Assembly: GCA_030704615.1 (NCBI GenBank)
Contig: CM060734.1
Coordinates: 36,208,001-36,272,000 of the forward strand
DNA length: 64,000 nt
Reading direction: 5' to 3'
From: Takakia lepidozioides
Lineage: Eukaryota > Plantae > Bryophyta
Shown here: positions 23,111 to 42,805 of the stretch, piece by piece
Numbering within the stretch: the stretch's first letter is position 1
How the letters are laid out: each line of letters begins with the position of its first letter
Notes under the pieces: generated by a model
The model's database searches: none
What the model saw: the letters and a program-made list of their open reading frames with translations, nothing else
What the model was told of the DNA's origin: nothing
Made by a program: the position numbers and the translations under genes

Positions 23111-23286
23111 TATAACCAGGAGAAGTGCCCATTCTGAGCAAGTTTGAATCAAGAACGCACAACTGAAAAACTTCATTATTTTACTTGAAGATAGCTCAAC
23201 TGTCCGGCTCTTCATACTGGTGGATTGGATAGATGTAAAGCTTCTCCAGCTCATGGCAAGCAACGCAAATTTGAATGTTGCTCAAT

Positions 23287-25014
23287 TCACCAGTAATCCC
23301 TGCAAGAACAAACCCCGTCTTGGAAGTGGTGAAAGCGGTTGGCATCCCATAGATAAACTTGATGTGGCAGTCACTAGACACTAAGCTTCTTGATAATTCG
23401 GATAGGAGTCCAAGGGGATGTGCTGATGAGACCAAAACCAATTGCCAGCTTCTCACTGTGGTGGCAAAGAGAAAATCCCTTTGCTTCTCCTCCACATCAT
23501 GCAATACGAAGTGAGTGTCAGGCATGTACCCGGCCTCCTTCATATGCCCATACAAGCTCTCCAGCACAGCACGAATGTCCTCTCTGTGGATGTGATGTGT
23601 CATCTACAACAAACGTATGGACTTGATTGTCAACCTCAATGCAAGAGCCACCTGGCTTCGTTCTGATCCTTCTCTTCTTCATCATGTTCCTAACCCTTGC
23701 AGCATCCTCCCATCTGCCAGCCGCCGCATAGATGTTTGATAGCAGCACATAAGTAGCAGCATGCTGAGACTCCCACTTGAGAAGCCATTTTGCTGCATGT
23801 TCTGCCAGCTTTACATTGCCATGTCTGCAGGCCCAGGCCCCCCACACTGCCGCACCTGGTTCAATTGGCATTCTATTGAGGAAGTCTTCTGCCTCATCCA
23901 AGTGACTTGCGCGGCCAAGAAGGTCCACTAGGCAGCCAAAATGCTCTACTGTAGGAGTGAGACAGGTGACACTGTCCGGCTTCAAGCCGTTCTTTTGCAT
24001 TCCTTCAAATAGTTGCAGGACCTCCCTATGACAACCATGCTGTGCATATCCTGAAATCATCGCACTACACGACACCAAATCTCGTTCAGCCATCCTGTCG
24101 AACACTTCCTTCGCATCCTCCATGCACCCACATTTAGCAAGGTCCACGAGGGCATTTTGTTCAGAATGACACCGGGTACAAATCCAGCTCTGATGATGTT
24201 GCCATGGACCTCTTTGCCCTTTTCCAGAGCTGCTAGGCTTGCACACGCATTGCAAACACACACAAACGTGATGTGGTTGGGCTTCACCCCTTCCTCATCA
24301 TTTGCTCATAGGTCTCCAAAGCCTCCACCCCACGTCCCTGCTGTGCATACCCTGCAATCATTGCGTTCCACGACACCACATTTCGTTCAGCCATATTGTT
24401 GAACACTGCCTTTGCATCCTTAATGCACCCACATTTGGCATACATGTCCACTAGGGCAGAGTTCAGAAGGACATCTGGTACAATTCCAGCTTTGACGATG
24501 TCACCATGGACCTCTTTCCCCTTTTCCAGGGATCCCAGGCTTGTACACACATTGCAAACACAAACAAACGTGATGTGGTTGGGCTTCACCCCTTCGCGCA
24601 TCATTTGCTCATAGTTCTCCAAAGCATCCCATGCTTGGTAAATCCTGCCAACATTATATTCCACGTGATCAAAGATCGTTGAGGCATTCTGTTGAACACT
24701 TGGTGAGCATCCATGATGCTCCCGCACTTAACATACATGTTGACGAGGGTGTTGAGTAGAAAAACATTTGGCGTGAATCCACTTTGGATTATGTGAGTGC
24801 GCACCTGCTTTCCAGCTTCCAGGCCTTTCATCTTGATGCACTTATGCAAGAGACAGACATACGTATCTGAATCTGCTGAAATGCCTCCTTGGTTTAAAGT
24901 CTGTAGAGCCTCTTTCAATCTGCCTGCCTCACAAAGCATCTTCACATGCCCAGAAGTGCCAGAAGAGGCATTGTGGACTCCCTCTCTTGATCCTCTTCCA
25001 GAAGCTGTGGTCAT
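23287..25014 (-). pseudogene. PLS-class PPR-E/E+/DYW RNA-editing factor pseudogene
   Basis: PPR motifs (NSALVDMYAKCG, NVVSWNAMIAGYAQ), E domain (AATYVLLSNIYAAAGRW), PG box, CHHSEKLA and terminal NRFHHFQDGVCSCRDYW* (stop 23287-23289). It is split over at least 5 frames, with internal deletions and a damaged CxxC region. Confidence 0.93.
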
Positions 25015-29042: not shown

Positions 29043-32000
29043 CTACAATGTCAATTCAGAAGGGAGGCAAGGCAATCGCTCTATACTGGCTCCAAGAAGG
29101 CGGAACTTCTGATCTAGTCTCTCATACCCCCGATCAATATGGCCCACACCCTCAATATGGGTGGTCCCCTCAGCTGCCATTCCTGCAAGGACAAGTGCTG
29201 CCCCAGCTCTGAGGTCTGTGGCTGTCACAGGTGCTCCATACAACGAGCTGCAACCAAAAAGCATGATTCTCACATGTTTGTCACGAATTCTTGCCAATAC
29301 ATCATCTTACATCTTCCATACATGCCCATACATCCATCCTCTATACATGTATTCAGCTACACCTACGACCTTTAGATGCACAGGCAGTCATGTTTATCTT
29401 CAATGCGAACAGAGATACTCAACAGGCCTTCATATACTCTACACACAAAGAATCACTTTTTGCAGGCAACACAAAGAGCAACGGTAATTATCTAGTTTCC
29501 CTTGGAGCGAAGGCCCATTGAGTTGATGTAGGTCCACATTTTCTTCAGAACAGAACGAACTACCTGCCCTGATCCTTGCCGCTAATGATGGCGATGTTCC
29601 AACTCACTTTCACGTTAGCTCCAAGCTTCTGTAGCTCCTCAACTGTTTGAACAACCCCTCACCCATTAACATTGGCACATGGATAAGACTGTCTTTTGGT
29701 AGAAGGTACCTTCAGTTGGTGAAAGAATTTCAATCTCTCAAATTCAACATACATGTGAACACCCATGTTTTGCATGTAAATATTGTTTGGGGGTTCAAAC
29801 CATGGCGCATGCGGCTCTCGAATACTGTCTCCTCCACGATACTTTGGCCACTGCAAGTTGTCAAAAGGGACATGAGCTGGGGTTGCAAGTCGGTTGGAAA
29901 GCCTGGATATGGAAGCGTTTTCACCTCAGAGCTTCTTAGCACCTGTGGCGAGTTAATCTGCAACCAGCCATAGTTCTGTCTCTAAGAGGAAGATCTCAAT
30001 AGCTCTAGCTTCTCCAACTTACTCTTTTCCCTCCCTAATCCCAAGAACCAAAACCCATAGACATACACCCTCTTCTTTGGGGGAAGGGGATAGTCTCACT
30101 GGATAGATCTAGGGATATCATCTTGTGCATACTTTTGGACCCAAGTCACAATCACTCTATGCAATCGACAGAGGACCCAGATAACCAACCTTTGTCAAGT
30201 CCAGCTGGAGCTGACACCTGTCAGGATTAGAAGATGCCTTCGGCAACTCCAACCACGAAGGAAGTAGGTGGTAGACAATACGCCAACACCATATTGACCA
30301 CAGAGAACCATTTCCTCCTTTAGCTTCATATTGGACACTACTAAAAGAAGTCACAATGAGAAAATAGGGAAGACATGGGAGAACTCAAACAAAGGTTCCC
30401 TTCAACCGATGCTGTTTAGTGTGTCTCATCCCGTGTTTCTTCTATCTGATGCAGAGGGAGCCACACCAGTAAGAAAGTGAAGAGAGATAGCCACTGATTA
30501 GACTTTGCTTGCCATAGGCTTGTGGTCAGCTTGGAAGTGCAGAAAAGGGGAGGACGAGGGGGAGAGGGGATTAGTGCAATGTGTGTAGAGCAGAATGTCT
30601 TGACTCTAGTAGTGGGTTTAACCTTCATTTTGGGTATGAATGATGTTGGCCTCCCAACATCCACTACTGTAGCATCACTATCTGATGCAAAATCCACCCC
30701 AGAATTCATATCCCAGAGTGGTAACAGCTTTTGGCATTGTCTAGAATGTAGACAAGTTGCAGACGACAAAGATGACACCTACCCGCAACCCATGACACCC
30801 TGTCTGCTGTATCCGGCAGCCAATGGCACGGAGCTTGCTCATGACTGAAGTCAAATGCCGGGGCACCACAGGGGCCATTGATATAGCTGAGCGCGTGATG
30901 GCAGCTGCTACCAAAAAAGTCCCAGCTTCAATTCGATCTGGTATAATCTTGTAGTCCGTACCGTGCAACTTCTTCATTCCCTTGATGGTGAGTGTGTTAG
31001 TCCCTGCTCCATGTATGCTTGCTCCACAAGATATCAAGAAATCGGCAAGGTCTACCACCTCCGGCTCCTATCAGCATTTCAATTCCCACAAATCAGACAG
31101 TGCAGAGCTTTCAAGGGAAGCAAATGGTCTCTTAAATGGCACTGGAGTCTCACTCCCCTTCTTTTTCCAGGGATTAGTGCACACCGCCATCAGGGGCAGT
31201 ACCCACAAGATGAAGAGGCTTTTCTTTATACTGACTTCAGGCATTATCACCTCTCTCTTTTTCCCGCTCAAACTGGGCGCGGGGTCAATGGCCACAAGGC
31301 TACGGCAAACAAAGTCTTATGAGTACAATCTCTCTCTCTCTCTCTGTGCGCAGGGATTATGGCCAGAAGGGTACACCCTGGCAAACTTACAAAAGGAACT
31401 GTGGGAAACGGTATCTCTATCTGACAAGTGAGGTTCTCCCGGTTCGTGGCTTAGAGCTCCTAGGGACATTCCAGGTTTGAGTTCATACCTAGGTTGGTCC
31501 CTACAAGGAAACACTCCAGACAGGAACGTAGTTTGCTTTAACTCGTCAACATGTTAATTTCGCACTTTTCATTCTCTCTTTCTTCTTCAAAGGTGAAGTT
31601 CTTTATATCTGCCAGGGGCAGCTGGGTTGTGGATTTTTAGTTTTCAAGCCATAGGTGTCTGTAGAGGTGAGGTACAAAGGCAGCACGGAAGACTCCAAAT
31701 CTGTACGAAACAGATTTAAATTGGGTTGTCAGGGTAGGAGAAGAGAATTTCTAGGCAACTTGTTGGCACTGGAGCTACAGCAGGAGCAACAAGACTGTCG
31801 CGGCACAGGGAAGAGCAACAGATAATCTGAAAGGCTCCTAAATAAGACAGATCATCACATATTCTCCTTTTGCAGCACTGAATTTGAAAGTATATCCTAA
31901 ACATCGTACCCACAAATCAGGTATATCCCCAGCTGGGCTAACTGAACAATCTCAGCAGCTAACTCTTAATTTAATCTTCAGGGTTTATGGCCACAAGACT

Positions 32001-33454
32001 GCGGCAAACAATGTCCCATGAATACATCTTAATTTGACCTTCAGCCTAGTCCAAAGCCCTTTCACGTACATCTTGAGTTCCAGCTTTTACATGGCAGCTA
32101 CAAAACAAGTGCACGCAATCTTCCTTGAATTTGAGAGTCATGAGAACTCCAAGAGTGAAAGAAAAGAGAGCGGACTTGAAAACCTGAGCCACATTCGATA
32201 ACGTAGTATTTCCGTCAGCCAATGCTGCAGCCATCATCAAAGTTTCCGTGGCTCCCACACTGGGGTAATCGAGGCAGAAGTTGCCACCAACCAAGCGCTT
32301 TCCGTTCAATGCGCGTGCATGCACCTTGCCTTGCCTACAGACACCTTTTCCTGTGAGCCATTACATAAAGAGCACTCTCATCTCTCCCCCTCCCATCTCT
32401 CTCGCCACCTCCCTCCATTTTACGTACTCTTCCTGATTCAAACTCAGTGAGAGACCGATGAGCAGCTGCTTGATTTTACCGAAGAAAAACAAGGCTGGGT
32501 TTATACCTGGTTTGGAGGAGACATTCACCAAAAGACAGTTTTTCAACACCTTGTAAAATGCAGCCCTAAACTTGATCCAGCCAAGAAACAGTCGACAGAA
32601 GGCTACCTAATCTCCACTTGGGCACCAAGAGCTTCCAACCCGCGCACGTGAAGATCGATGGGTCGGGCGCCTATGTTGCATCCGCCAGGCAAAGGGACCA
32701 CAGCCTCGCCTTTCCGTCCGACTAAGGCACCAATAACAAAAAAACTTGCCCTCAGTTTCCTCACCGCTTCTGGGCATGGCTCAACGGACGTCAGATTGCT
32801 GGCATCCACAATGATACCCGAAGGCGACCGCTGGATACGAACCCCAATTGATTGCAAAACTTGGAACATGCGACGTATGTCATGAAGGTCCGGTATCATT
32901 CGAAGGCTCAATTCCTGTTCTGAGCATAACGCCCCAGCCAACACAGCCAAAGCTGAATTCTTGGCTCCACTAATCTGAACCTCCCCGGACAAAGTACGCC
33001 CACCAGTAATCTCCAAACATTCGACCAATGGCCCTGGAACCCGAGCGCCCATGGAGAGAGGGAGAGACGACACCTCAGTCCCATCGGCAACGTCCACGCA
33101 TTCGACCAATGCCCCTGGAACCCGAGAACACATTGAGAGAGAGAGAGATGGCAGCTGGAGTGCCAGCCTGCGGTACACTTTCTTAATCTCCTTCTTGGAT
33201 GCTGCCGGTCTAAGCCCTAAAGTGGGCAAATGCTCACCATGTCCTCTTCCACGGTATGATCGCACCTCCACACCACTCTTCGCCCCCTTCCAGCTTATGG
33301 ACTTCGAACTCCCCGACCCTTTGCACCCTGTGACAGATTGGCCATGAAATGCACTCTGACATGCTACCTTCTCCACGCCGCAATCACCAAACAGTCGAGC
33401 CATTTTCCCTTGATTTCCTACGTTGATCTTTCCTCCACTTAGCTCCATATTCAT
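29043..33454 (-). CDS. murA: UDP-N-acetylglucosamine 1-carboxyvinyltransferase (plastid peptidoglycan pathway), about 574 aa, 6 exons
   Basis: Exons 33454-32607, 32334-32184, 31067-30783, 29957-29801, 29642-29564 and 29247-29043. All introns are GT-AG with consistent phases (2,0,0,1,2), total 1725 nt. Motifs: [62 protein letters not shown]. About 145-aa N-terminal extension. Confidence 0.96.
31200..31346 (+). mobile_element. LINE 3'-end fragment with (CT)n tail, in MurA intron 2 (second copy at about 31987-32027)
   Basis: TTCCCGCTCAAACTGGGCGCGGGGTCAATGGCCACAAGGCTACGGCAAACAAAGTCTTATGAGTACA, matching the 25810, 22900 and 6636 copies. Confidence 0.65.
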
Positions 33455-36187
33455 CTCACTTAGACGTCCTGCACTGAATGCCCCAGCTTAAAAACTGTTA
33501 TCTTTTGCATTTAGTTTTTTTCCTTCCCACTCGAGCTTGGCCTTCACGCTCTTTCGATGGTTCCATAGGAATGTACGAAATCTGCCCAAGAAGAAGGTGC
33601 ACTTTATCTGAAGCGGAAAACTCCCAGCCTTACAATCTTATCACTTCAAGGCCCTTCCCCTGCGTGTTCCAAATCTGGAACTAAGTGCTGCTACTGCTCT
33701 ACAACCCAGGGCGTGTCTCTTCTTCATTCACACTCCATTTGGGTGTCACCCTCCTGACAAATCAACAATGCGCAAGTACAATCTTTCTCTTCTTCCAGAC
33801 TGGTGGCCCTCTTCCTCTTCCACACAAGGGACGCGTCCTCCACACTGGCATTGCCTGCTGTTAGACACGAGACCCCTTTCTCATACCCACCCTGCGTTGT
33901 GGTTGATAGGACAAATAAAGAGTTTTGAATGTTGTTGGCCTGTCTCTCTCCCTCCCTCTTGGGCTGTGCATGCACACTAGTAGGTCTGTAAATATGCTGG
34001 ATTCCCTAAAAGAGACACTCCGGGGAACCCAATTACCTTTACCGTCCACAAAAAGGATTGAGGATCCTTGTTGCCAGCTACCATCTTCCCTCGTACAGCT
34101 GTTGCGCCCAATAATACCATCCCACTTCCAAACTAATCCAGGTTATAAGACCCTGCTAATTAATCGCCTTATTAGGCACCAGAAGCTACCCATCACTGCA
34201 ATCACTCTAATTTTGTCATACAGGAAGCAGTACATGAGGATGTGCCATGTAATTGGGTTTTTGTTGTGTGTGGGAGCTAACCAATGCAAAGTTGTTTGTC
34301 CCAATGTGTGACAGGAGGAGGCCGTGTACAACATTCTTCCAGAAATCCTCATTATAGAACAGAACAAATGTCCACTAGGGACCCAGAAATTGTCATACAC
34401 TGTCTGCTGTCTGATATGTATGTAACAGTGTGAGGACGCCCATTGATATAGAGTTGGGCACTGCAACTGGAAGCCATAGATCTTCTTTGTCTTGTTACTA
34501 AAAGTAAGAGAGTAACTTTCTCATCCCTGCCATGATTTGAAAGTTAGTGAATCTCATCCATCCACAGAGGGCCAATAGGTGGGCTGGGGATGGATTCCGC
34601 AATCCCTAGTGATAAGCCATGCTTTGACTAGGTCACCATTGTTATCCTTCCTCTTCCATTACGTCCCTTCAATTGCTTTCCATGGCAAATGTAGCTTGGG
34701 TTTGAGGAAAGTCGGGCCAGTTAGACAGTAGCATGTGGTGGCTGGATTGCATGCACAGGTGGTGGGCAGGGATGGGCAGGGAGGGTAACCGCAAAACACT
34801 TTAAGCCAGCGTTCTAGTCTTATATTCGGCAGCTGCAGGGTATCCGAAGCTGAATCATAAACAACAAGTGTGGGACCAGGCACACCACACCGCTATTTCC
34901 ATAACGGAGTATTGTTTGTTGGCTCTTCTTGTAGAGGAAAACTATGCATGCCAAGTTTTTGCCTACATGTGTGTGAGCTTCATTCATTTTGTTGCTTCTT
35001 TTGTCTTCGGTTCGGCAAAACAGGTGGCGTTGAAAAAGCTGGACTACACAGCAACGTTGGATTTCATATTGGCAGACTGCACATGTGTAGCATTAATGTG
35101 GTGGACGATCTGGTACATGGCAAGGAGTCGTTGGCCAATTCATCTGTCAAAAACTTTCGTGTATGTACGGAGTGCTGTGAACTCCTCAAAAGGACGCCAA
35201 CCAGCTTGCAGTGTTTTTCTTAAGAAATTTGGAAAACAGCACGAGTGGCTACAGAGTTTTGCAGGAAATAGCCATTTATTCTGTTCATCCACTGTAATTC
35301 ATCCACCTATGTGCCATCATCCATTATATCATCCATATTTGGCGAATTCATCCATAATTTATTTTGATTTCATCCATGAAAAAACAGTGGATTTGCGACA
35401 ATATTTTATTTTATTTTTTGAGGTCGAAATCTGGCGATTATTCGCCCCTAAAAGAATGTCTGCCAGCTTGATTGCATCTTCTTAATATAAGTAGTGCAAT
35501 CCTTCTATCCTTCCCAAGCTTGGTACTACTTACAAGATTTCCTGAACACTGAAGTGACATCAAAAGAGAGTGAACTTTTGCTGGGCATTTCTGCATATTG
35601 AGGCCCAGAGTGCTCATCTGCCATCATGCAGAAGGTATACCTCGGTTCGCAACTCCTTTATACCTAGTCACTAGCAATTAATTGAGGTTTCCATTCAAAT
35701 AAAGATGGTTCAAGTTCCAATTTACATTTTTGAAAGGGCCTGCCTGCAGAGCCCACCAGAGTAAGGTTGAGGCTGAGGATAGCCCTCACCCTCCTTTAAC
35801 CCCTAAACGAGTGAGCCACCCCTCGTTTTCATCCACGCCGTAAGTTCCATGGATGAAGTCCAATGAACATGCGGTCTGAATGAAAAATGTAGGCGCCCGT
35901 GTCCTCTACATGCTCCAACAAATGGCACACGGAAACCATAAATTCCCTGCACGGTAGGATTTTCTTAGTGCCAGGAGTACCAGATTTGGGTGGTGTCCAA
36001 GCAGGTTGACCTCCAACGTGGCAGCCTAAGGGGGTGTCCACGCAGGTAAGTCTCCCACGTGGCAGGTTGGAAAGCCTTTCAGAAAATGCCCCATCCACGC
36101 CTAGAAATTTACTCTGAATCATAAATCATTTAATCATTTAATCATAAATCATAAATGAAAGAGGTTATTTTCTCCTCTCACTACAAA

Positions 36188-37356: not shown

Positions 37357-39622
37357 TCAAAACTGCAAATCATCATTCGTACCTTCTGCATATGATGGCC
37401 CACCTTCTGGTTGTCCAACTATTGGCTGTCCAGCTAAATATAGCTCAGGATGAGAGAACAAATGTCTGAAGTTTGTGGAGTTCTTCCACAAAGATATGGC
37501 CTCAATCAAAACAGGTTGACATGCCTGCACACTTGGCCCTTCCAAAGCAACACGAAGCACACTTTCCAAGTTCTTTGTTTTCAACTTGTTTCGAAATTTA
37601 GTTTTGATTGAGTTTTGAACTGAGAATGCCCTCTCACATGCGGCAGTGCTTACACATTGAACTCGAGCAATTTCAGAAAGCACAAGCAAGTTTTCATACT
37701 TCATCGTTAGAGAAGGGTTCCAAGTCACCATGCCCCAAAGATCCTTGAAAGTTTTCTCCATCCACTCGGTACTTGCCTGTAGTTTGAAAGCAAAGAACTC
37801 TCGTTTCACCGCTGCTATGTCAACAAGGGCAGGCAATGTCCTTCCTGCAATATGTCTTTCGACACCATAGTGCGCACATAATATTTCCAACTCTACTACA
37901 CCCCAACTTGCTAACCCCACTTGCCTAGTTGGTAGGTTACATGGACTCAATATTTTGAATGCACTTACAACTCCGTTGTCCTCAAATCTGGCATCCAAAG
38001 CATTGCAAACAGCCTCTGCATAAAGCTTTTGGAAGGTAAGTGCTGCCTCCAAATCACCCCCCATCCTCTCTCGTGTCATTTGTACACCATGAAAAATTGG
38101 ATCCCCTAATCTCAGAGGCTAGCCGCCTCAAATACCCACCATGAGGACCAAATTCCGGGATGATGTGATAACCCATTTCCTCATTGAAGGTGGATTGGTT
38201 CAAATCCGTGCTATCCTCAATGAAAAACATTCGTATTTGTGCAATCTCTGTCTTAACTATGGACCCAATGCTGGTTACATCCACAAACTTCCATTGGAAC
38301 ACACGTGAGAGTAGAGATAGACCGTGCAACATATCAGCCAAAAAATACAAGACATAAATCATTTTGAATGACCTAAGCTTGTTATACAAAAGAGAGGCTG
38401 ATCCATCATCATTGGCAACCGGCACATCTCTAAAATACGTGACAACACTCTCAAGACTATCACAAAGCGATGTCACGGCCTGCCACCTATATAACCAACG
38501 AATCTTGTGAAACCTTTTGAGGCACTTCTGAGCATCATTAAGCTCGGTCTGCAAAGCTTGCAAGGTTGCCTTATGCTTAGATGATTTGCGAAAATGACCA
38601 GCAAGAGAGTTCAAAAGTGTGTCAACCTCATTTGAAATAAGATGACATGCTGATGTCTTGGCAGCTTCTAATGCTGCCAAGTTGGTCCTATGTGCTACGC
38701 AATGGACGGCCAACATAAAGGGGTTTACCTTTTGCTTAAGACGAGCAGCCACGCCGGATCGAGCCCCCACCATGGTTGCTGCCCCATCCGAACCAAACCC
38801 CAAAAACTTATCTACATCCAAACCCCACTCTTTCAAACTAGTTAGTAAACACTCATATATCATTGCGGCATCCTTCTTGCCATCAATAATCTGAAGTAAA
38901 CCCAAAAACAGAGTGACTGGCAAACCCTCTTCAACAAAAGAAGCAAAAACAACAAGATGACCGGTCACTGAAATGTCAGTTGATTCATCTATCATGATTC
39001 CATAGTACTTGGAATCCTTCACTCTATCCAACACCTTTTTCTGAACAACACATGAGATACAATACAATATATCAGCACACGACTTCTCATCATGGTACAG
39101 TTTCTGGGTAATACAAGCTTTGAGAGTAACCAAAAGTTGATACAAACCTGGAAATTTGCTAAATGGCAAGGCCTCCAAACCAATGTAGTAAGCAACTTGG
39201 AAAAGAGCCAAAACAGCATCATCACAAGCTCGATTAGCACTAGCTATGGCTTTCTCCATGGCTTTCTTACCAGATTGTAGGGCCCAAGAGAACTTACGAT
39301 GCTCTTCTGACCTAGCATGGTCTTGGAATGAATTCACCTTGACATTGACAGAACCAGCATTTGCAAAGACTGTCCTCCATCCTTTCCCTCTACAAACTTT
39401 ACAAAAAACCCTACCTAGATCATGGTTAAACTCAATCCAATCAAATTGAGTGTACCAAACATCTTTCCATGCTTTCTGGGCTGCCTCTACACTATTCGAT
39501 GGCTTGTCCATACCACTTGAAGATGAGGCAGGGGGGACAGCGGAAGGAGACTCCTCATCACAATCACCAGTGCGACCAGTCCTAAATAACATATTTCTTA
39601 GATTCCTTTGGCGCTTGGCCAT
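37357..39622 (-). pseudogene. hAT (ZNF862/ZMYM1-like) transposase of about 754 aa, interrupted by a single 1-bp frameshift
   Basis: TTF-type zinc finger (W..QFDW...FCKVC), IDESTD, SDGA, HCVAH, IRWL and STAACERAFS dimerisation domain. ATG 39622 to stop 37357 is 755 codons + 1 nt, with the extra base in the A5 run at 38092-38096. Confidence 0.9.
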
Positions 39623-40101
39623 AGCCAAGACCTTACAAAATACAAATTTATAGCACGGAAATTGCAACAAGGAAAGGCCAGCGAGTGCAAGCAGGCGGGA
39701 GCGTCGGCAGCACATCAACATACAGCCAGTGGTAAGTGCGGGCCCCGGCAGGTGAGATGTGGACTTAGCAAAGAACGAGTGCAAGGCCTGCCAACTGCCT
39801 GAAGCAAATCAGAAAATAGAAGGGGAGGTGGGTCAGAAATGGGTGCGAGGTGAGATGCAGCCCTCCCAGCCGCCTTTGCCCGACACAAAATAGACACAGC
39901 TTGTGCCTACTGCAAAGCAACAGAAACCGTGGTCGAAAGAACGGTAGAAGAACCGAAGGGGGAGGCCTACCAATGCCCTTGCTTTTTACTGCATGATGAG
40001 CACAAAGTATGCAGAAAGTCATGTAGTTGTAGACTTCGAAAGGCAAAAGTCATAACCTCTCACTAGGAAAAGCAAAGACATAACCAAATGAAACAAAGAC
40101 T

Positions 40102-41352: not shown

Positions 41353-42805
41353 ATGGAGGCAGGTAATGGCGATGGCGTGGAGGAAGAGAGCAAGCGAGAT
41401 GGGAAAAGTCTGCGCAGGCCTCCATCTGTGGACGATCTGTTTGCGCCCATGTTTCGCTTGGATGTGCATTCTTCCAGGGTAGCGTTGAGCTCTGGAGCTG
41501 CAGCAGCAGCAGCCGGGAGAGATGGTGGGGAAGGGAGTGCAGCCAGGCCGGAGTTCGTGGCGGCAGGTAGGAAGGAAGTCTTTGCAAGTGCAGCATTGAA
41601 GGAAGAGGTCGGTCGAGAGGGTGCTCGGCAGTCTTACGCGGCAGATGCACAACCTCCCTTTGCTGGCGGTGAGCCTCCCCATTCTAGATTAGCGGTTGGT
41701 TCCTTGCCATGCGCTTAAGAAGCTTTGATGTGAAGTCAGGCATGCTGGAAGCGCTGGTAGTCCTTTATCAACTTTGGTTGCTGTGGAGACCGTTTTAGGG
41801 TTCGTGAATCACATGGAAGAGAGAACGTTTCGGATGTCGTAGTAGTTACTGCTCGACTCGTGAAGAGAGGGACGTTTGGATGAGAACAACTTCCATCTTT
41901 TGTCTCTTGTAGTCCCGGTGTCTTTTAGGTTTCCGCTGAAATCAACTGAGGTAGGTTAAAGTACTAGGTTTTTTAATAACTCGGGGTGCTGATAGTCTGA
42001 AAATCTGGCAGGGGTGGAGGGGTCTGGAAACAAGAAGTATGCAAAAAGTAGTGGAGACGCTGAAACTCAGACTCCAGTCAATGGCACGAAGGATGCCCTG
42101 TTTTCTTCACGGTGGAGCATTGCAGTAGAGAAGGGCGTTTCAGATGCTAGCAAGGAAAGGTTTGGTGAAGTGGAGAGACCTGTGTCTGGCACTGTGACCG
42201 AGAGCTCCACAGGACTTTCGGGTGAAGTGGATAATGGGTCACTGTCGCCAGATGTAAAACCCGGCGTCACTTCCTCGGGAACTGCAGATCCGGCAATAGG
42301 GCTGGATGGCTTTTCATCTTTGGGGGCCAAAGAGGCAGCTTCCAGTTTCACAAATTCTGAAGCTGGAGGTCAGTCCAATTCCACATCTGACGATGACCAG
42401 CTGATCGTAGACGAGAGGAAGCAAAAGCGGATGCTCTCAAATAGAGAATCAGCACGTCGATCACGTCTTAGAAAACAGCAACATCTGGATGAATTGCGGG
42501 CACATGTGGCACATTTGCGGGCTGAGAACAATCACATGCTGAATCGGTTTGGCCTCGCATCCCAGCAGTATGCACAATTGACCGATGAGAACCGTGTGCT
42601 AAGATCCCATGCCATGGATCTAAGCCGCCAGCTGCAACGGTTGCATCATACGGCTGCTGCACGGCACCCTGGTGGTTTACAGGCGCTTGGCCTCGGTTCT
42701 GGACACTTGGACCCATCATCCTCACCCTTGACCTTGACCTTGCGCTCTGGCAGATCTGATGGAGATGGCTGGGCGACATCCTCGCTCCCAGCCTCTTATC
42801 CATAG
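41353..42805 (+). CDS. bZIP transcription factor (group S/C-like domain), about 369 aa, 2 exons
   Basis: Exon 1 41353-41668 (G|GTGAGC) and exon 2 42012-42805 (CAG|), phase-1 join in frame. Domain DERKQKRMLSNRESARRSRLRKQQHLDEL plus a long leucine zipper. Confidence 0.88.

Follow-up and report, generated by a model that had tools for sequence, protein, structure and literature searches.

The stretch analysed here, referred to throughout as the window, is a 64-kb segment of the genome of the moss Takakia lepidozioides (assembly GCA_030704615.1, contig CM060734.1, 36,208,001-36,272,000), and all coordinates are positions within it. Its minus strand carries a gene for MurA, the UDP-N-acetylglucosamine enolpyruvyl transferase (1-carboxyvinyltransferase) that performs the first step of plastid peptidoglycan synthesis, and the first 100 codons of this gene appear to derive from the first exon of a gene for a small chloroplast J protein of the dnaJ 8 (J8) type. 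The frame that begins the gene is an open reading frame (ORF) of 283 amino acids (aa) at 32603-33454. Two sequencing runs, here called X5 and X6, which are probably RNA and come from studies distinct from the one that probably supplied the assembly, were mapped to 30000-34500 and, together with profile and protein searches, yield the following features:

33455-33999, minus strand: 5' leader of the MurA mRNA (545 nt or more), containing seven upstream ATGs (X5 contig 9, X6 contig 21)
32606-33454, minus strand: coding part of MurA exon 1 (RNA joint)
33233-33454, minus strand: presequence, codons 1-74, the transit-peptide part of a J8-type exon 1, with homology from about codon 9 (33430) (phmmer and tblastn to P0123-P0127 and P0131)
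33155-33232, minus strand: remnant of J-domain helices I and II, codons 75-100, ending at the last base of Q100 (DnaJ profile positions 5-28, J8 exon border, modelled helix)
33135-33148, minus strand: (TC)7 microsatellite, (GA)n on the plus strand, translated within LPSLSLS just past the junction (sequence)
33080-33156, minus strand: upstream copy of a tandem duplication, repeating the beginning of the MurA domain in degenerate form (repeat search)
32999-33075, minus strand: downstream copy, running into the first strand of the enzyme (repeat search)
32606-32998, minus strand: rest of MurA exon 1, with the SGAKN lysine and the catalytic cysteine (Pfam, solved chains, splice joint 32606/32333)
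32183-32333, minus strand: MurA exon 2 (RNA joints 32333/32606 and 31066/32183, GT..AG; tblastn)
30783-31066, minus strand: MurA exon 3 (a piece of X5 contig 9; GT at 30782-30781)
29801-29957, minus strand: MurA exon 4 (AG/GT sites and tblastn, without reads)
29564-29642, minus strand: MurA exon 5 (AG/GT sites and tblastn, without reads)
29043-29247, minus strand: coding part of MurA exon 6, stop TAG at 29045-29043 (AG/GT sites and tblastn)

The identity of the enzyme is clear from its own part of the frame. The Pfam family EPSP_synthase (PF00275) covers residues 150-282, the C-terminal half of the ORF, with an E value of 1e-27, and solved MurA chains align with residues 146-282, which correspond to their residues 5-148. 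Exon 1 keeps the SGAKNSAL motif with the lysine of SGAKN, as well as the catalytic cysteine loop PGGC.IG.RP, which pairs with LPGGCAIGSRPVDLH of chain 5bq2_A and whose cysteine is Cys115 in E. coli MurA numbering. Six open exons, searched one by one, align with P0018, P0019 and P0022 in tblastn, and at the level of alignment those downstream of exon 1 match the exons of L003 and L004 one for one. Together they give an in-frame coding length of 1725 nt (849 + 435 + 441), that is, 574 codons and a stop. By its open exons and conserved residues, the locus is an intact, expressed, six-exon nuclear MurA gene.

Expression was assessed from assembled RNA contigs, from which rare isoforms drop out and which do not fix the transcription start. 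Contig 9 of X5 (2664 nt, spliced) is continuous over 32606-33999 and then crosses the joints 32333/32606 and 31066/32183, both GT..AG on the minus strand. The joint 31066/32183 recurs in X6, in which contig 20 spans 33085-33270 across the junction between the two parts of exon 1 and contig 21 covers 33740-33890. In both runs the depth is zero within the intron at 32416-32566 and above 34077. X5 differs from the assembly by three single bases, two of them in exon 1 (one giving L5V), and by a 2-nt gap, and because of these base differences we regard it as coming from another individual. Source DNA contigs contain the junction as well, as do RNA contigs of the two other studies. One mature mRNA spans the J8-derived and the MurA parts. 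An earlier note on this DNA, made from the letters alone, would have taken transcripts that start downstream of the J-like segment as refuting its reading; X5 contig 9 is instead unbroken over the whole of 32606-33999 and starts at about 33999, upstream of that segment.

Candidate start codons lie at 33454, 33448 and 33403; those at 33448 and 33403 combine A at -3 with G at +4. The frame is open for 150 codons (no stops), as against five and six stops in the other two frames. The leader contains seven upstream ORFs of 4-36 codons, all of which end at or before 33460, the last of them 6 nt before the main ATG. These upstream ATGs may represent translational control, or may be a sign that most transcripts start further downstream.

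Residues 75-100 of the ORF (33155-33232) were described in the earlier note as J-like, the Ser/Gly/Lys-rich stretch ahead of them as a probable transit peptide, and the whole as an N terminus taken from a plastid J-protein gene. Positions 5-28 of the 63 in the Pfam DnaJ profile (PF00226) do match residues 78-101, with 19.7-23.5 bits and E values of 1e-3 to 6e-5 depending on the piece scanned. With no more than a third of the domain there to be matched, this falls short of the DnaJ gathering score of 27.8 bits; a full J-domain of 63-70 residues scoring above that value is not found in the ORF. Homology is not confined to the J motif but takes in the presequence: it extends over codons 9-100 (minus strand, 33155-33430), and its counterpart is exon 1 of the land-plant family "chaperone protein dnaJ 8, chloroplastic". 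A word-based search with residues 1-150 returned no matches because the query and the J8 proteins have no 5-residue word in common. An exhaustive phmmer search with the same residues against 1.84 billion representative proteins gave ten matches at E <= 1e-3, seven of which are small J proteins or exon-1 read-throughs of 110-184 aa (E 1.6e-10 to 8.3e-4). Of the remaining three, one, a protein of 606 aa containing repeated J motifs, aligns to residues 72-100 only; the other two are long repeat proteins, which we regard as spurious. The longest alignments begin at query residues 9-18, well upstream of the J motif. Among them, P0127 (180 aa) aligns to residues 12-101 and is a complete J protein with a presequence, a J-domain (57 bits to Pfam DnaJ) and an acidic, Trp-rich tail.

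Searches made in the opposite direction agree. A J8 exon-1 profile made from seven exon-1 pieces, with the window left out, scores 61.6 bits (E 1e-17) on the ORF, while the next six-frame piece of the window reaches E 3. Seven J proteins give tblastn matches of E 5e-10 to 8e-15 at 33152-33454 and none better than E 0.1 elsewhere in the window. The Ser/Gly/Lys-rich stretch aligns with the J-protein presequence NVERVLLQSSLHADAV, and residues 1-74 contain 11 Ser and Thr, 15 Gly, 11 Lys and Arg, and 5 Asp and Glu. An AlphaFold model built with the J8 alignment places a helix at residues 87-99, with a predicted local distance difference test (pLDDT) score of about 80, and gives residues 1-71 no confident structure. 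A metagenome scan with the J8 exon-1 alignment turned up two loci that match residues 74-100 only and are otherwise unlike the window, and no second fusion. The description of residues 75-100 is thereby borne out by the DnaJ and J8 profiles, the fate the note had foreseen for its proposal if no DnaJ hit appeared has not come about, and the upstream stretch turns out to be homologous to the J8 presequence and so to be part of the captured exon; origin of the N terminus from a plastid J-protein gene likewise gains support from the alignment of residues 9-100 with small J proteins.

The J-derived piece would not be expected to work as a J-domain. The HPD tripeptide between helices II and III is required for stimulation of Hsp70, and a remnant without HPD and without helices III-IV cannot work as a J-domain. 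The HPD that a J-domain protein would have is missing after LALQ in the ORF. Lacking it, the remnant is a half J-domain and not a working one, which agrees with the view in the earlier note that helices I-II had been kept without HPD. It differs from the consensus of its subfamily at 8 of 26 positions and has lost family-invariant residues, a pattern that would fit relaxed constraint.

A word search with P0127 retrieved 460 relatives, many of them named at source as "chaperone protein dnaJ 8, chloroplastic" and including bryophyte members from Sphagnum, Ceratodon, Physcomitrium and Marchantia; an Atlas feature search gives the same family name. AtJ8 (At1g80920, DJC22) is a member of a clade of small J proteins specific to land plants (PMC3720927; PMC2844072) and is among 19 J proteins reported to be imported into the chloroplast in Arabidopsis (PMC3720927; also PMC2844072), and about ten Physcomitrella homologs are given for the DJC22 clade (PMC3720927). 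MurA residues 9-100 align with the first exons of the small chloroplast J proteins (AtJ8 and its relatives AtJ11 and AtJ20), which comprise the presequence and the pattern TLGL..AASK.EIK..YR.LAL. The nearest J8-type subfamily (MRKLLRGG), which begins MRKLLRGGQVSITRAF, is 38-45% identical over 85-99 residues. In contrast to dnaJ 8 proteins, the MurA chimera has no HPD, no helices III-IV and no C-terminal WEEWMGWEGAG, and its DnaJ score is below threshold, with the 8 of 26 remnant positions off consensus. On these alignments the putative donor is named at the level of the family, dnaJ 8 (DJC22). Several of the database "proteins" of this family are exon-1 read-throughs. One is P0129 (110 aa), a false protein for which a gene caller ran J8 exon 1 through intron 1 into exon 2 (L005 4001-4333, L006 1764-2096); the fetched L005 and L006 loci have a stop in J8 intron 1, and the gene there is not translated to P0129.

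The point at which the similarity ends is perhaps the most informative feature of the locus. J8-type genomic loci have three exons, and their intron lies directly after ...LALQ, where the MurA match stops. With the border marked by a slash, exon 1 ends as TAC CGC AAG CTG GCT CTC CAG/GTGATC in L007, TTG CAG/GTGCTC in L011 and CTC GAG/GTAGGA in L005, and the spliced J8 forms L001, L002 and L013 read CAG/TAT CAC CCG GAT GTG, encoding YHPDV, with the transcript continuing as TATCACCCGGATGTG. The window reads TAC CGC AGG CTG GCA CTC CAG/CTGCCATCTCTC at the corresponding position (also given as CTC CAG/CTGCCATCTC). Similarity to J8 therefore goes no further than 33155, which is the final base of codon Q100 and coincides with the border between donor exon 1 and intron 1. 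J8 exons 2 and 3, including YHPDVCKG, have no match in the 64-kb window by tblastn. The J piece would accordingly come from genomic exon 1 rather than from complementary DNA (cDNA), because a cDNA copy would have included YHPD. That the border is exact suggests a join originally set by splicing, with the intron lost later. The earlier note had the match stopping at the (GA)n microsatellite, exactly where YHPD would follow: the absence of HPD at that place holds, whereas the end is set by the J8 exon border and the microsatellite is merely adjacent. In six comparisons of the 40 nt that follow Q100 with J8 introns, one (against L007, p about 0.009) beat shuffled sequences; removal of these CT-rich 40 nt, as an intron stub whose GT had mutated to CT, would break the frame.

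Comparison with other MurA genes shows what the usual front of the gene looks like. The relatives sampled are proteins of 155-495 aa and not full-length annotated plant MurAs. Plant MurA pieces with up to 90% identity turn up in a word search with exon 1, their alignments being limited throughout to residues from about 139 on, and moss relatives are 76-90% identical in the enzyme part of the exon. By tblastn and blastn the similarity of MurA relatives to the window begins at 33025-33115, mostly at 33034-33037. Ahead of that, the moss proteins P0001-P0009 and P0011-P0016 have 100-250 residues before the VEC motif that are unlike the J8 exon. Long, unrelated N termini are present in 24 plant MurA relatives, none of them with a J piece, and the J8 exon-1 profile finds nothing better than E 0.07 among 120 MurA relatives from this sample. 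Profiles of the usual moss MurA N termini detect no relic of such a sequence in the window, and, apart from MurA exons, the window has nothing in common with the MurA locus L003 or the J8 locus L011. Because the N termini of the relatives lack a J piece and the window holds no relic of them, the usual front end would have been replaced by the J8 exon in this lineage. Relative to canonical bryophyte MurA (Marchantia MpMurA, PMC11588093; P0001-P0016), the enzyme region is homologous and the catalytic cysteine is kept, whereas the window gene has the J8 exon and an 81-bp duplication and lacks the 100-250-residue extension and its motifs.

In the other moss MurAs a single exon encodes both the N-terminal extension and the beginning of the enzyme (P0001-P0016; L003, L004, L012). 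It is far longer than a transit peptide requires, and its Bryopsida-like motifs are SSRVRVG, RKSKSFD, APICGVENGVASEV and ELTEVSPFRPG.

Between the J piece and the enzyme lies an in-frame tandem duplication of 81 bp (27 codons), in which 77 nt are repeated at 79% identity with a spacing of 81. The frame is kept by the duplication (81 = 27 x 3). Both copies fall inside the span of X5 contig 9, where no difference from the assembly is listed. Tandem Repeats Finder did not report this duplication. As a separate matter, a phase-compatible intron running from a GTGAGC donor (GT 33237-33236) to TTCCAG near 33115 or 33034, which would skip the J piece, was considered and rejected for the isoforms that the contigs represent, as X5 and X6 contain no such joint and their contigs are uninterrupted there.

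We propose the following account, to which we assign a probability of roughly 80%: the locus is an intact, expressed MurA gene whose first 100 codons come from a dnaJ 8-type exon 1 and whose usual N terminus was replaced by exon shuffling. A genomic J8 exon 1, encoding the transit peptide, helix I and most of helix II, would have been joined to MurA, and the HPD loop and helices III-IV, which reside in donor exon 2, would never have been carried over. The captured exon would have taken the place of the long, moss-type MurA extension. Translation would start at the ATG at 33454, 33448 or 33403, and the J8-derived presequence would direct import into the plastid and be removed by a cut ahead of the J remnant. 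Helix II would thus remain on the mature enzyme, followed by the duplicated linker, with the remnant as an inert N-terminal tail unable to stimulate Hsp70.

Several observations weigh against this proposal. Identity between the J-derived part and the closest J8-type proteins is only 38-45%, and in a tree the MurA N terminus falls beside the MRKLLRGG subfamily with support of 85/55, on a branch of 1.02 changes per column. With its seven upstream ATGs, the 545-nt leader would lower the rate at which the main ORF is initiated. The evidence for the chimera is at the level of DNA and RNA. Finally, a second MurA with the usual N terminus elsewhere in the genome may exist, and would mean a diverging duplicate and not a replacement. 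Some of these points also feed alternative explanations. The J8-derived stretch could be a transcribed but untranslated relic within a long 5' untranslated region, with MurA made from M107 (MCSR) or M134 (MGAR). The upstream ATGs and the loss of family-invariant residues in a remnant that is 8 of 26 positions off its subfamily consensus would both suit such a relic. We nevertheless consider it unlikely, since 150 codons have stayed open in the MurA phase despite an identity to relatives of 38-45%, when the other frames hold five and six stops; a start at M134 would leave about 13 residues before the MurA-aligned part, with no room for a targeting signal, and the ATGs at 33448 and 33403 have A at -3 and G at +4.

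Somewhat less probable again is that the gene is a redundant, decaying MurA duplicate, with another MurA doing the work and the chimeric front a by-product of duplication into a J8 locus. Pieces of pentatricopeptide repeat (PPR), E and DYW genes nearby in the window, hAT transposase-like ORFs 3.4 kb upstream and an in-frame duplication that disturbs the start of the enzyme region could be read that way. Decay is hard to reconcile with six open exons with GT..AG borders (two in RNA, the rest from sequence), with an enzyme part that is 90% identical to its best relatives and keeps both the catalytic cysteine and the SGAKN lysine, and with expression in two independent RNA data sets. That the J-like match is a chance product of a Lys/Arg-rich amphipathic stretch, or the junction a chimera of the assembly, is very improbable. 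The Pfam score taken alone is below the gathering threshold and the first word search with residues 1-150 was blank, but the homology continues into the presequence for 65 residues ahead of the J motif, and the junction is shared by the source DNA contigs and RNA contigs of two other studies, one of them (X5) from another individual. Within the account of J8 exon capture, a more far-reaching version may be entertained. J20, a relative of J8, is said to hand DXS to Hsp70, and the retained half J-domain might persist on mature MurA and offer a docking or decoy surface for the stromal Hsp70/Clp quality-control system, tying MurA turnover to the chaperones; we give a slim chance to this, or to the chimera being the only MurA of the species.

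Capture of a transit peptide by exon shuffling is a known route, and the MurA-J8 chimera is a further case of it. PMC8018952 describes how Populus rpl32 uses a presequence that comes from a duplicated gene for Cu-Zn superoxide dismutase, and plant cytochrome c1 is given as a case of targeting-exon capture (Long et al. 1996, cited in PMC7456531). The three cases are alike in that a targeting exon from a nuclear gene for one organelle protein is joined to the coding sequence of another, and in that the join falls at an exon border with a few mature residues of the donor carried along. They differ in that MurA, far from being a recent arrival from the organelle, has long been a nuclear gene and had an N-terminal extension before, so that the event would be a replacement and not a first acquisition, and in that a J protein served as donor and left a half-domain that can still be recognised, with the join within one continuous exon and no intron left. 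We found no paper on a MurA-J8 fusion, and the bryophyte MurA paper (PMC11588093) contains no mention of a J-domain.

The plastid peptidoglycan genes of bryophytes are a standing model for bacterial enzymes kept and re-addressed after endosymbiosis. Against this background the locus offers an unusually legible exchange of targeting signals, with a known donor family, a base-exact border, a recognisable half-domain and an expressed chimera. It may also be regarded as a natural experiment on the role of the long moss MurA extension, and on whether a J8 presequence with a helix I-II stub suffices for import. Should the chimera prove to be the only MurA of the species, the 100-250-residue moss extension would be dispensable. 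For annotation, the locus is a warning that a DnaJ match below threshold near the N terminus of an enzyme can reflect true homology even where J-protein function is absent.

The surroundings of the gene contain several further elements. Two adjacent ORFs at 37357-39784 (minus strand), about 3.4 kb upstream of the mRNA start, carry features of a hAT transposase (zf-C17orf113, DUF4371 and the hAT C-terminal dimerisation region). A role for hAT in moving the J8 exon is possible; no transposon-style inverted repeats were found around the captured exon. ORF pieces with PPR, E-motif and weak DYW-deaminase matches lie at 23196-24727 (minus strand), and fit a region that collects gene fragments. Within MurA intron 2, the interval 31251-31320 holds about 60 nt of a dispersed repeat of very high copy number, with a (CT)n run behind it. 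ARAGORN does not identify this repeat as a tRNA. Its summed DNA contig depth is about 312,000, as against 23-29 around it, and many contigs of all four runs end there. Further upstream of the gene, an ORF at 42014-42805 (plus strand) encodes a bZIP domain (E 1e-12) and is probably an exon of a neighbouring transcription-factor gene.

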